The translations under genes were made by a program, and so were the position numbers. Below are positions 19,609 through 25,800 of a stretch of 64,000 nucleotides of DNA, one piece after another (the first letter of the stretch is position 1; each line of letters opens with the position of its first letter). The notes below the pieces were generated by a model. That model was not told the origin of the DNA. It saw only the letters and a list, made by a program, of their open reading frames with translations, and did not search any database. This stretch comes from Pecten maximus. Taxonomy: Eukaryota. The DNA is taken from assembly GCF_902652985.1 (NCBI RefSeq), contig NC_047017.1:23498001-23562000 (forward strand), read 5' to 3'.

Positions 19609-22396
19609 CAGGCGCGTAGCTGCCTATACGCAAATACGCAGTTGCGTACACATCAGTTTTCAACAAACAAAAAACAAACAAAAAACACAAAAACAAAGAA
19701 AGAAAAAACTGTTATTTATATGAGCTTATCTATACACAAAATATGAATGCTGCCCTAGGTGATGGTTCTAGTCAAACCCACTAATTGATATAACTAGTCA
19801 TTTAGTGGTAGGGAACGCAATCAATCGGTCGGTTAAAGTGGACAAAGAAAAATCCGAAGACCTATTTCTTTGGAAGAAATTTCAGCTCGCCCCGCAGGAA
19901 TCATCAGCATCAGAAAAAAGTCAAAATGGTACACCTGATGTAACAAAGCTCCCTGGTTGTCAGAATTGCAAAATGCTTACGCTAACATTTAATAGCATTC
20001 AGGACATAAAAGATCAATGCCAAATGTATGCATTTTATATACAAAATTTGCAAGATATATGTATATATGAGAGGTTGAAGCAAATTCTAAATAGCACACA
20101 AAGCCTAGTTTTGATATTGAACGGTTTACACAAAATATGGGAAAAAAGAAAATAAATCCAAATAATTTCAAAAATGTTGTCAAATAAAAAAGATGCCAAA
20201 TATATATATATACTAATATAGACTTAAAAACTTAATATAGACTTAAAAGTGTTTCGATAAGTTTAAAATGAGCTTTGATACAAAAACGTTAAGTCCTAAA
20301 CATAGGAAACTTAAGTTAAAAGAAAAAAATAGAATAATTAAATAATATTTTTTGTAGGTTTAACTTTACTCTACTAAATGATTATTAACTTGATTCCGGT
20401 TTGGTGTCCCCCACCTCTCTTGTCTTGATCAATCAGTCTATTTGGTATTGTACCTTCAAAATAGAGCAAATTATTTTCTAAATTCTCCTTATTTTCTTCT
20501 GTTTATCTCATACCATTCCCTTTTACAATACATATTTATTTTATACAATTCAGATTATCTTTTTTATACTAAACAGATTATATTTTTGAATATGTCTCAA
20601 GTACACGTATTTGCTTTTTTTTGCAGTTAGACGTACACGTAAAGCCATTTCAGGTAAAAGTAGATTTCAATTAATTCCATGAGGAAAAGGGGTATCTGAA
20701 AGCTCTTTTACACACATGTCAGACAATCTAACAGCTATATTCAGATACGTGCTGAATGCAAACTATATAGCATTGTTAGATCTCATATCCCTTAAAATGT
20801 ATTATCTTATTATATAAGATATGTTATCACAATAATATGCCGAAACACAATACAAAATAAAATTATGATTTAACTCATTCCATTATAACAATTATACACA
20901 ACGAGATTTTTTTTCAAATATGTGTGTGTGTGTATTTCGGCACAAATTTCATGAAGCTTGTAGAAAAAATAATCTGATACCTTCTCAATTAAGAAAAGTA
21001 AAATAAGCGCCTATAATCATCTATTGTTAAACGTACATGTAGTCAATGAGCGAATAGTGAATATCTAAATTGCTCATTTAAATATGATTTAAAAGTTGGG
21101 CATAGTAACATTTAATTTTTTTTCTGGGGTCTGATCTAGTCCACCAGGGTGAAGTCTGATTTACATACAGTATCTGTTACTGTTAATCTTAAAATGAATT
21201 ATAAAACATTAACCAAAACAACAAGTCCAGAGTTATATAATCATGCGCATAGAGTACAAAATTCACTATTGGAATTTTCCTCACTACATGACAGTTGGTA
21301 AAATGCAGAAATGAATCAATACTTTTAAGGAAATCGTTTGCTTTCAAACGTTAGGTGAACGTTACTATACGTATGATTAGGAATGTATTGAATATAATGA
21401 AACACAGCTTTCTGAACGCAGATAGACACAGAAATCTAATTTTCAAATGTACAGATTTTGATATTATCTATGTACCCTTTGTCTGATCTTCAATGAAATT
21501 AGTAAATTAATATATTTTTAAATAATTAGGTTTGCACACCAACGCTGTCACGAATGTTTTGCCTTATATATCCAGGCTGCTAAATAGTGGGATTAACGTC
21601 TCCAAACGAAACCAAGTGTGGTTTTCCTGGATTGCCTGGGTTGTCACTTGAATACGGTTCACTGGTAGTTAAGCTTCTGAACTCTGACCCCTATCTGAGA
21701 GAGTGTCCTAGGCTCGGCTATAACCGGAACAAGGACATTAATCCTCGTCAATCAACCCCTATCTGATTATCATTCCAACTTTTAATTAACTCTAGAACAC
21801 ATGTCGTGCTATGTTATGACCACCGGTACAGTTGAAAGATTCATTTATATCAAATTCAATTCGACTTTACTGGAACTTTTATAACTACAACTGTATTTTT
21901 ATATATAAATGTATTTTACCTACACATACCGTAATGAAAACATCACCCATTGTCGCAATGATCATTCCAAAACGTCGTGTTACGGTAACGCGACTTAAAT
22001 ACAAGGTTGATCTCAGGTATTTGGTCTTGATTTCTTTCTTTTACAGCCCTTCCCACAGGAAAGGTATTGCTTTGCCCAATGAACTATGGTTATATGTACC
22101 AGAGACATATATATGTCTCTGTTATGTACGTATGGTTATTGAACACGTATTCGGACATGCATGTAAACGTGTTCCAAACGTGCAAAATAAGGTAAAGGCA
22201 ACACAAATCATCATTATTAATGCTGTACAAGGCTCGTCGTTTCAAGAAAACATGACAACGTAACTATTCGGACATCGTTAAATGACGGACTTTTAAAATT
22301 GCCCAAACACTTAACTGCATATCATAATACGGTACTCATTCACCCCTCATTTCATTTCTCTGCATACACATACAAAATAACTTGGCTACGCGCATG
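19609..22396. mobile_element. Non-autonomous TIR element, 2788 bp, CAGG termini, 5-bp TSD (hAT5-like)
   Basis: CAGGCGCGTAGC ... GCTACGCGCATG (11/12 inverted match). GTATT duplicated at 19604-19608 and 22397-22401. No recognisable transposase ORF. Confidence 0.7.
22100..22121. mobile_element. TIR-only remnant (putative excision footprint) of the CAGAG family
   Basis: CAGAGACATATATATGTCTCTG flanked by (A)TATGTAC / (T)TATGTAC. Confidence 0.7.
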
Positions 22397-22563
22397 GTAT
22401 TATCACCAAAATGATTCAAACTGATATCATTCTGTTATCTGTGCTGTAACACAATAGTTCGTTCATTTATTCCACCAGCAGTTTTATATTATAAACACCA
22501 GCATTTAAACTATGCCGTTTATCTTTTTAAAAGATATTTCTTATTATTAATACTAACCAGTAG

Positions 22564-22587
22564 CAGAGATCTATATATAGGTCTCTG
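22564..22587. mobile_element. TIR-only remnant (putative excision footprint), related subfamily
   Basis: CAGAGATCTATATATAGGTCTCTG with perfect 7-bp TSD CCAGTAG at 22557-22563 and 22588-22594. Confidence 0.8.
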
Positions 22588-22840
22588 CCAGTAGGCTGTA
22601 TACAAATCAATCTGTTTGGTACGGTCAAACCTCATAAATGAAGGCGTCTCTGTCGTCATTTTGTTTTCGGATTAATTTTGCATACAAATACTAATTTATT
22701 TGATCAAAATTTTCAATATATTGATAATTATTTGGAAGATTGATTTTTCCAAAATTAGACATTAGTTCACCGGTTAAAGTCTGGGGTTTTTTCATCCTGG
22801 TTTGTACGAAAGTATCTCTAATAATTCAGTGCTAGCCAAA

Positions 22841-25800
22841 ATGGCGTCCATGGACACATCAAGATCCACATCATCAAATGATTATTCTTTAACTATGGAT
22901 AATTTCCAGTCACAGCCACTTGGTTCAAGTGATTATAAGTCAAATGAGCCTGCTGTGTATACTCCATCAAATGACGAGTTTCAATTCGTACAACAATCAC
23001 CAAATATCGGTAAACCATGACTATCACGACCTCTTACTGCTGTCAGTTGACTGTAATGTCCAGTAGAACTGCTGAATATATTTACAATGAAAAAAAAATC
23101 AGATATCTACATTTCTTTTTGTTTGGTAACATGAGTTAATGATATCTTATATATGTGATAGTAATCAGTTTCTTCTGACTATATTTTAACAGATTTTTTC
23201 AAGCGTGATACCAGAGACATATATAGATATATATGTCTCTGGTGACACTGACAGTACATGTAGGTAAATGTTTCTCTTCAAAACACACATGTAGTACAAT
23301 GCAATTTTCTGTCTGGTGCAGGGGTCAGGAGAACCTCATTTAGTCATTGTAGTGTGATACTAATATGGGTACCCAGAACAGCCTTAAAGGGGAAAAGGTG
23401 AGATCGAAGGCGCCTTGCAAATACAGATGTATACGGAGAGCCTTGAAAAAGGATTATGAGTATAAGACTGTTCTGTAATGATACATGCCTTCTGCATTAA
23501 CAGCAATGCAAGTGATGTAGATCTAAGTCAAATATACTGGTGAACAACCAGACATATCAGCTGCAAGAGAACACCGACCAATAGAACATCATTATAGTAT
23601 TGCTAAAAATGTACTGTAAAACCACCACTCTTAATTAAGCTTGCTGTCTTATGTGCCACCTTCAAGCTTGGCACCTTTATTCCAATGACATTTAAATACA
23701 AGTTAGGAGGTTGTTAAAGTTTTGTGTGAAAGGCCATGCATGACATAAACCTAATAAGAAGGTCAGACAACTATATATTGTCATTAACAAATTAAACTTC
23801 AAGAAAAATTAATGGATGAACTTATATTTAACATAAAAAGGATATAATTACCAGTAGATAAAATGGCCTTTTTGCACATCAAAGGTTAAAAAAAAAGCAT
23901 ACACATATTAGATATATATTTATATTTTTTCTTTTACTGCAAGTATTCTGAAATATCTGTTTTATTACTGACTGACTGTAGCGGGAAACAGAGTTGAGGG
24001 TACAATGGATATGGCTGCAGAATTAGCACCATCAGACTCTGCATATGGAGTGCGACCTCGAGGAGCTGCATCACAATTTCTTGATAGAAAAGGTTTCTCC
24101 TGGCTGCTGGAAGAGGAGGATCTGGATGAGGAGGATAAACAACCACTCCTGTAAGTCATAAGGCTCAAGGCAGTCTCAATTATTCTGAAGTTTTATCTTC
24201 TTTTTTTTTTTTAATATCGATCTAGTGTTGATTAAGTACCAATATAAAAAGAGTCAGTGAAATATCAGAATGTTACAATGAAACTCTGTTGACATACAGC
24301 TCTTTGATTTTAATTTGGGATACTGATGTCAAAAAGATTTTTGATGAAATTTAGATGCAATGACACGAGTAAAACTAGTTGAGCTATGCATGTGTGCAGT
24401 GACATGTTATGTTATGTTAACTATGTCCTTCATATAATGTTGTATGGATTTAAAACAAAATTAAAACAAAGTTGAAATGTGACTGATATATCAATTACGG
24501 TTGTGCTCTGTATATGTTTAAAAATGCCAAGTATTGATTTCTTTTTGTAGAGAGGCACTTGATATAGACCTGAAGGATATTTATTACAAATTGAGGTGTG
24601 TGCTGTTTCCTCTGCCTCAGCTTGGCTTCAACAGACATGTAGTGAGGGAAAGCCCTGACTTCTGGGGACCACTGGTTGTCATCCTCCTGTACTCTCTAGT
24701 ATCGTTGTATGGACAATTCAGGGTGAGAGCTTTTATTGTTACACAGATCATCAGATTTATATAGAAATATTTTAAATATTTAAAAACGGTTATATTAATA
24801 TACATGTACAAGACAATCAACAAATATGATTTATGCTTCATTGTCAATCTATATATGCCATATTAAATGAATGAGAGGATGGTGGAAGCCATCTTGGGAC
24901 CTAATTTAAATCTACTGAAAAAATATGTCACTTGTATACTTATCTTATATTTATGGGTGGTTTGTGGTATATACTTGTACGTTAGATGAGATATAAGGTA
25001 TGTTATACATTGGTATTGCCCCTCTCTTGTTACAGGTGGTATATTTATTGGTATTTCTCCTGTTGTTACAAGTGGTATATGTTATACATTGGTATTTCCT
25101 CTGTTGTTACAGGTGGTATATGTTATACAATGGTATTTCCCCTGTTGTTACAGGTGGTATATGTTATACATTGGTCTTTTGTAACTTTTGAAAAAAAACT
25201 TACGAGTGTGAAATAAATTCCATATCCAAAAATCATGAGTCGTGTGACCTGTTTCCACCACAATAATATCGGCTTGAATCAAAGGGAAACGTTGCCAAGT
25301 CTTATTTCGCATATACCAAAAAGATGTACAGATGACGGCCAGGACCAAGTGATGGGATGTCATTCGATTATTGATGATGTCAATTACAATTGCAGTTTGT
25401 GTCAAAGTTCGAATTCTTGACCAATAAAAAGACCGGAAGGTCATATTCCACTAGTGGGGTATTACATATACTTATCCAACAGTCTGGCCATTTATACAAT
25501 CGCTTGAGAGTGGAATAATACAGGGTATTGTGGTAGAAATTGATATTTGTTACAGGCAGTATATGTTATACCTTTGTAGTGGAATTGGATGTGGTCAATC
25601 ATCGGCAACCAGGTAGCTCAGTGGTAGAGTGCCCGTCTAGAGTTCGGAGGGTCCCGGGTTCGAAGCCCCGTTCTGGCTGCTACATTTTCTGCTTCTTCTG
25701 TTACACATTGGTATTTCCCCTGTTGTTACAGGTGATATATATATGTTATACACTGTAATTGTTCTCTGTTGTTACAGGTGATATAATATATATGTTATAC

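Follow-up and report, generated by a model that had tools for sequence, protein, structure and literature searches.

Most transposases leave few bases behind at excision, and excision scars are therefore rarely recognizable. To our knowledge, a long staggered cut has so far been mapped biochemically only for the P element of Drosophila, whose target motif is palindromic and spans 14 bp. The stagger of the cut made by the Drosophila P transposase is unusually long, at 17 nucleotides (nt), which leaves the donor flanks with 3' tails of 17 nt from the terminal inverted repeat (TIR), and both local hopping and a preference for promoters are documented for this element (PMC7776569). In the fly P{wa} element, such tails are joined through short microhomology, bluntly or with templated insertions, and the target duplications on either side stay intact (PMC2895639). 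Further systems of this kind are Galileo and BuT5 in Drosophila and, outside insects, Pdre2/THAP9 in zebrafish. Here, we describe a stretch of 64,000 nt from the king scallop, Pecten maximus (C3:23498001-23562000; hereafter the window), in which three short palindromes are very probably footprints that a young DNA transposon family of the P superfamily left on excision.

An earlier note on this window had reported three palindromes made up of outer TIR bases and placed between direct repeats of 7(-8) bp. All three are present in the letters, and the observation is confirmed. The first is a 22-nt TIR stub (22100-22121; 22092 to 22129 with its repeats) that consists, as had been proposed, of two 14-nt TIR ends sharing a 6-nt TA-repeat overlap. 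Its direct repeats, TATGTAC at 22093-22099 and at 22123-22129, are offset by one base, with an additional T at 22122; the most fitting reading is a duplication of 8 bp in which two bases would have been added to the left copy. Stubs identical to this one recur genome-wide, and the copy at C3:31160986 is flanked by a perfect 7-bp duplication. The second palindrome, of 24 nt (22564-22587; 22557 to 22594 with its repeats), is built from a variant of the TIR and lies between perfect repeats, CCAGTAG at 22557-22563 and 22588-22594. The third, of 30 nt (23212-23241; 23205 to 23248 with its repeats), is flanked by repeats that match at 6/7 positions (23205-23211 vs 23242-23248), and its junction recurs at a second locus (L036), there with a perfect duplication. 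The first and third sites are composed of the outermost 14 nt of the TIR found in the full copies of the window (17637-18774 and 53899-55037), so that the earlier assignment of these two sites to the full-element TIR, and of the site at 22564 to a variant, agrees with the letters. The third site had also been described as 14+2+14 nt. This layout, 14 + GA + 14 or alternatively 16+14, holds, but the GA may represent TIR bases of a subfamily rather than filler. A subfamily TIR without CA at positions 15-16 occurs at C17:30495484-30495561 and C1886:5405-5482, and such a TIR may account for stubs in which G or GA comes after 14 nt, the third site among them.

Palindromes of this type could in principle arise by chance from AT-rich or TA-microsatellite sequence, particularly as the core of the stub is a TA run, able to expand and contract by slippage. 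However, the TIR 14-mer occurs 10 times in the window where 1.2 matches are expected, and an exact-pattern search of the whole 918-Mb genome, with the reversed pattern as control, returned main-family stubs at 228 places for lengths of 20-27 nt, 299 for 28-58 nt, 11 for 59-88 nt, 2 for 89-118 nt, 3 for 119-148 nt and 1 for 328-358 nt, the control being 0 in every class. Stubs of the variant TIR occur at 818 places (24-54 nt, mode 32 nt; control 0), and two further examples of this variant family carry 7- and 8-bp duplications, the latter at L088. The excess of 14-mer matches in the window, together with hundreds of stubs against zero in the reversed control, excludes a chance origin, and the perfect 7-bp repeats flanking 36 of 45 sampled sites speak against it as well; its probability is close to nil. 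Under uniform placement, ~0.002 triplets of stubs inside 1.2 kb would be expected per whole genome.

The stubs cluster at distances below 10 kb. Three lie within 5 kb of an intact element end, compared with 0.31 expected at random (P ~0.004), and the window supplies two of these three. Such short-range clustering fits local hopping or shared hot spots. At C11:33005943-33006165 and C78:7146-7298, a TIR end together with the same flank is found every 44 bp, at least five times, which seems to represent a scar and its flank amplified into a small tandem array.

The length distribution had been put forward by the earlier note as the check that would separate excision scars from ordinary internal deletions, and it turned out as an excision origin predicts: stub lengths peak sharply at 20-36 nt and tail off thinly, and a gap separates them from the copies, which begin at 716 bp. 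Exact 21-nt element ends number 479 genome-wide, and the paired plus/minus ends among those listed delimit copies of 716-3851 bp, none shorter. Within the short class, even lengths dominate (among 50 listed stubs, 12 measure 20 nt, 14 measure 22 nt and 15 measure 26 nt), and those with letters mostly consist of TIR ends joined via the self-complementary TA run. The alternative, in which replication slippage or aborted gap repair shortened the elements with no enzyme-defined break point, can draw on the rare longer derivatives, namely the 11 stubs of 59-88 nt, some of which retain 30-40 nt of subterminal sequence, and on the few ends that keep 19 nt of TIR or more. Yet deletions of this kind should yield broad lengths and arbitrary break points, whereas more than 500 stubs measure at most 58 nt, the range from there up to 716 bp is near-empty, and the break points on either side fall within the outermost 18 nt. 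We regard internal deletion as highly unlikely.

The anatomy of the scars was studied in 45 sites of 28-58 nt, namely the first independent ones in that class, whose letters and flanks were read. Target duplications, the second check proposed earlier, are found at all 45 sites, 36 of them as perfect 7-bp repeats and nine matching at 6/7. The target motif reconstructed from these sites is palindromic, as it is for the P element of Drosophila, with T at duplication position 2 (36/45) and A at position 6 (32/45), and beyond the duplication with T at -2 (32/45) and A at +10 (24/45). The 45 sites contain 38 different junction sequences, which points to independent events and not to master copies. 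This diversity bears on a further explanation, that the stubs are themselves mobile, extreme miniature inverted-repeat transposable elements (MITEs) of 20-36 nt that were copied from masters and inserted by the transposase. Every stub having a target duplication would suit such micro-elements, as would the junctions that recur many times (20-, 22- and 31-nt forms). Against them stand the number of distinct junctions and the exact agreement of the recurring forms with the products expected from TA-run annealing of identical tails. Micro-elements also give no reason for a hard limit of 18 nt per side. Moreover, the known binding sites of P transposase are internal to the terminal repeat (PMC7776569), so that a stub would be without them. 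Mobile micro-elements thus appear very improbable.

Excision, by comparison, would leave a defined amount of TIR on each side, and across the 45 sampled sites 14-18 nt are kept per side. Genome-wide, 16 places carry at least 17 nt on each side with at most 4 nt in between; their lengths are 34 nt (one place), 35 nt (three), 36 nt (ten), 37 nt (one) and 38 nt (one). Junctions are formed by TA microhomology, by blunt joins or with templated filler, and in the longer stubs the filler often copies pieces of the TIR. The earlier note had cited the 17-nt cut of the fly enzyme and taken these scars as a record of the cleavage geometry of a molluscan one. A long stagger is supported, and its value is more likely 17-18 nt, with 18 nt favoured on the basis of the 18-nt retention limit and of the 36-nt mode, since the latter fits filled-in 18-nt tails joined blunt.

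These observations suggest the following course of events. The element would insert and duplicate 7 (rarely 8) bp of its target. Later, at either end of the element, the transposase would cut the transferred strand precisely at the terminus and the other strand ~18 nt inside the TIR, and each flank would retain a 3' tail made up of the outermost 17-18 TIR bases. Host end joining could then anneal the self-complementary TA run of the identical tails to give products of 20-26 nt, join them near-blunt to give 34-36 nt, or add short templated filler to give up to ~58 nt, while both target copies would stay, one on each side of the stub. The recurrence of 20-, 22-, 24- and 26-nt products is explained if identical tails are able to pair only via the TA run. 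It is the anatomy, numbers, retention limit and duplications of the stubs, together with the P-type partner described below, from which we infer this cleavage chemistry and repair pathway. The proposed long staggered cut with its TIR-derived 3' tails would be a likeness to the Drosophila P element, from which the scallop family would differ in a stagger of 18 nt instead of 17 nt. The junction classes match those tabulated for P{wa} (PMC2895639), although the scallop scars are natural relics in an assembled genome and the fly junctions come from a laboratory cross.

Some junctions are more complex, with a 20-nt stub within a longer one, duplicated TIR starts, or an additional 14-nt stub placed after the end of a full element. 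They are located at L042:101-153 (C3:19528090-19528142), L007 (C1:39364169-39364214) and L092:446-476, and could reflect repair synthesis from a template or a new insertion into an existing scar.

A putative autonomous partner was found by upstream extension of a transposase family that lies downstream of the satellite described below (L054-L056). The extension yielded the exact family TIR at C5:3888865 with the flank ATTCACT. The right TIR end joined to ATTCACT has one exact match in the correct orientation, 13.7 kb downstream, and a 28-nt version of this pattern is unique in the genome, which sets the bounds of the element at C5:3888865-3902535 (left end read, right end by pattern), flanked by a 7-bp duplication and bearing perfect TIRs of 21 nt. 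Over 363 nt, its left arm shows 85% identity to the first full copy of the window, and the same satellite lies inside it. Two relatives start at the same TIR base, a C13 copy whose 540-nt left arm is 100% identical and a C17 copy with 98% identity across its first 259 nt; the C13 and C5 copies are 99.7-99.9% identical for at least 6 kb. An end at C5:3906861 was rejected as the right end of the partner, as it belongs to a separate non-autonomous copy with a different flank and 98.7% identity to the first window copy. The partner also holds a 333-amino-acid (aa) open reading frame (ORF) on the other strand, in a stretch that is 99.7% identical in the C13 copy; this ORF has no Pfam match.

The transposase itself is encoded by a 962-aa ORF with three Pfam matches above cut-offs: a TNP-like RNase H N-terminal domain (PF21787, E-value 8.9e-25), a GTP-binding insertion (PF21788, 7.6e-20) and an RNase H C-terminal domain (PF21789, 4.2e-6). 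Among PDB entries, its sole relative is 6p5a, the P transposase of Drosophila (E 1e-13), and the two sequences align at the second Asp motif and at the Glu motif. As in the fly enzyme, the RNase H fold is split by a GTP-binding insertion domain, and GTP may be needed for pairing, cleavage and strand transfer as in the P superfamily. The element combines the split RNase H fold with a duplication of 7-8 bp (7 bp at both window copies and at the autonomous copy) and with TIRs common to autonomous and non-autonomous copies. Its assignment to the P superfamily is thus supported by the transposase architecture, the duplication length and the probable cut geometry. Further differences from the Drosophila P element are the duplication of 7 instead of 8 bp, an unrelated TIR sequence, and an autonomous copy of 13.7 kb with satellite-bearing arms.

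P-type transposases are numerous in this genome, with at least 44 RNase H domain matches from six or more families in a profile search. At least six families have long open frames of up to 1007 aa, and several have near-identical copies (five in the 793-aa family); the locus L087 holds two inverted copies of one family. Representatives of other families (L084, L086-L089) were rejected as partners, there being no matching TIR within 8-10 kb. A search with PF12017 gave no match in this genome or in the control genomes and is hence uninformative.

The two full copies in the window are non-autonomous, ~1.14 kb each and of opposite orientation, as read from the letters and the TIR alignment. Copy 1 lies on the plus strand at 17637-18774 (17630 to 18781 with its perfect 7-bp duplication, CCCCTAG), and copy 2 on the minus strand at 53899-55037 (53892 to 55044 with TCCTGAC, likewise perfect). 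Both carry an internal 211-bp satellite, which by repeat analysis of copy 1 comprises 2.8 monomers at 17986 to 18580. Common copy sizes genome-wide are spaced ~210 bp apart (716, 926, 1136, 1346, 1554 bp and onward), which suggests a varying number of satellite monomers. In the main family, ~530 scars compare with ~240-570 surviving copies.

This organization resembles that of Galileo, a P-superfamily element of Drosophila, which likewise has 7-bp duplications and arms with internal tandem repeats of ~210 bp in numbers varying among copies (PMC3573991), and many copies of which are non-autonomous. Galileo TIRs, in contrast, measure 0.3-1.2 kb and are near-identical, whereas the near-perfect inverted repeat of the scallop family is ~25 nt and the satellite is internal; the Galileo paper reports no footprint census (PMC3573991). 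The window copies are also comparable to BuT5, a MITE of the Drosophila repleta group, which is a ~1-kb non-coding element with the same ends as the divergent P-superfamily master that mobilises it (PMC3698922); the scallop family belongs to a different phylum and differs in sequence. Zebrafish Pdre2/THAP9, like the scallop family, is a P-type system outside insects, and its excision has been shown experimentally; unlike the scallop family, it has 8-bp duplications and 13-bp TIRs, zfTHAP9 produces larger flanking deletions and no integration, and a natural footprint record is not described (PMC10983969).

The earlier view of the palindromes as excision scars is supported by the length peak and gap, by the duplications at 45/45 sites and by the P-superfamily partner. 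Several points weigh against it and against the geometry drawn from it. Genome-wide, 11 of ~598 ends keep 19 nt of TIR or more, at least two of them in nested or complex junctions, and the 36-nt product was read as 18+18 in one of ten cases, the other nine being assigned by length. Many main-family stubs and most variant stubs are known by coordinates and counts, and in the short class (20-27 nt) target duplications were examined at two sites. Later duplication of scars may have raised some of the stub counts, as in the 44-bp array on C11 and in neighbouring pairs of variant stubs of the same length. The footprint evidence comes from a single genome assembly, and the sequence of the partner was read except for ~3 kb of its interior and the right arm beyond the terminal 28 nt. 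Finally, the earlier note had anticipated a THAP-P transposase with the same TIRs. A P-superfamily transposase with these TIRs is present, but profile searches with E up to 1 found no THAP domain in the 962-aa ORF or in its first 505 residues, another difference from the Drosophila P element. None of the upstream open segments looks THAP-like, as judged by eye without a Pfam scan, and the atlas leads on THAP were weak; an upstream exon or a different DNA-binding module is possible.

The three stubs surround the start of a putative Yip1-family gene on the plus strand, whose first coding exon was assigned by reading frame to 22841 to 23009, with the ATG at 22841. The first two sites lie ~720 bp and 254 bp upstream of this ATG, and the third lies ~370 bp downstream, in the intron following the first coding exon. 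The exons were searched individually against Pfam, unjoined, and a single one of them, at 26426-26686, gave a Yip1 match, which is weak and below the Pfam cut-off (E 0.0016); the name YIPF4 given in the earlier note is therefore putative. The promoter preference that the note saw in this location may be real, and it draws on this one cluster together with the short-range clustering of stubs elsewhere. The 5' region of the gene would thus have been hit and vacated at least three times.

The first footprint is hosted by an unrelated, abundant repeat (21700 to 22550, left limit approximate; 1808 candidates at 85-93% identity), which occupies the sequence upstream of the start of the gene. The last 150 bp of this repeat recur at 2439-2588 of the window and in several loci. 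At least 37 of its paralogues align across the first site and are 33 nt shorter there, according to coordinates rather than letters. The alignments to the three closest paralogues are interrupted at the stub; on the side of the paralogue, the two aligned segments directly adjoin each other or share 5-9 nt. Both features are as expected for sites with a single target copy and no stub.

The phenomenon as such is already known from flies; new are the large natural archive of scars in a mollusc, the probable 18-nt geometry and the candidate active partner. A literature search, in a limited collection, found no account of P-type footprints in molluscs. Hundreds of unambiguous scars yield, without experiment, the cut position, the target motif and the spectrum of host repair, and past excisions can be counted against surviving copies. 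We know of no transposon tools for bivalves as a group, in which a candidate active pair of transposase and cargo is now identified. Two transposase copies are 99.9% identical with open frames of 959-965 aa, next to a third, truncated copy, and the family may therefore remain active. Taken together, we see an even chance that the long stagger is ancestral to the P/THAP9 superfamily and conserved in a lophotrochozoan, that more than 1,300 germline repair events archive both an 18-nt geometry and polymerase-theta-like end joining, and that this family may still be at work in the king scallop genome.

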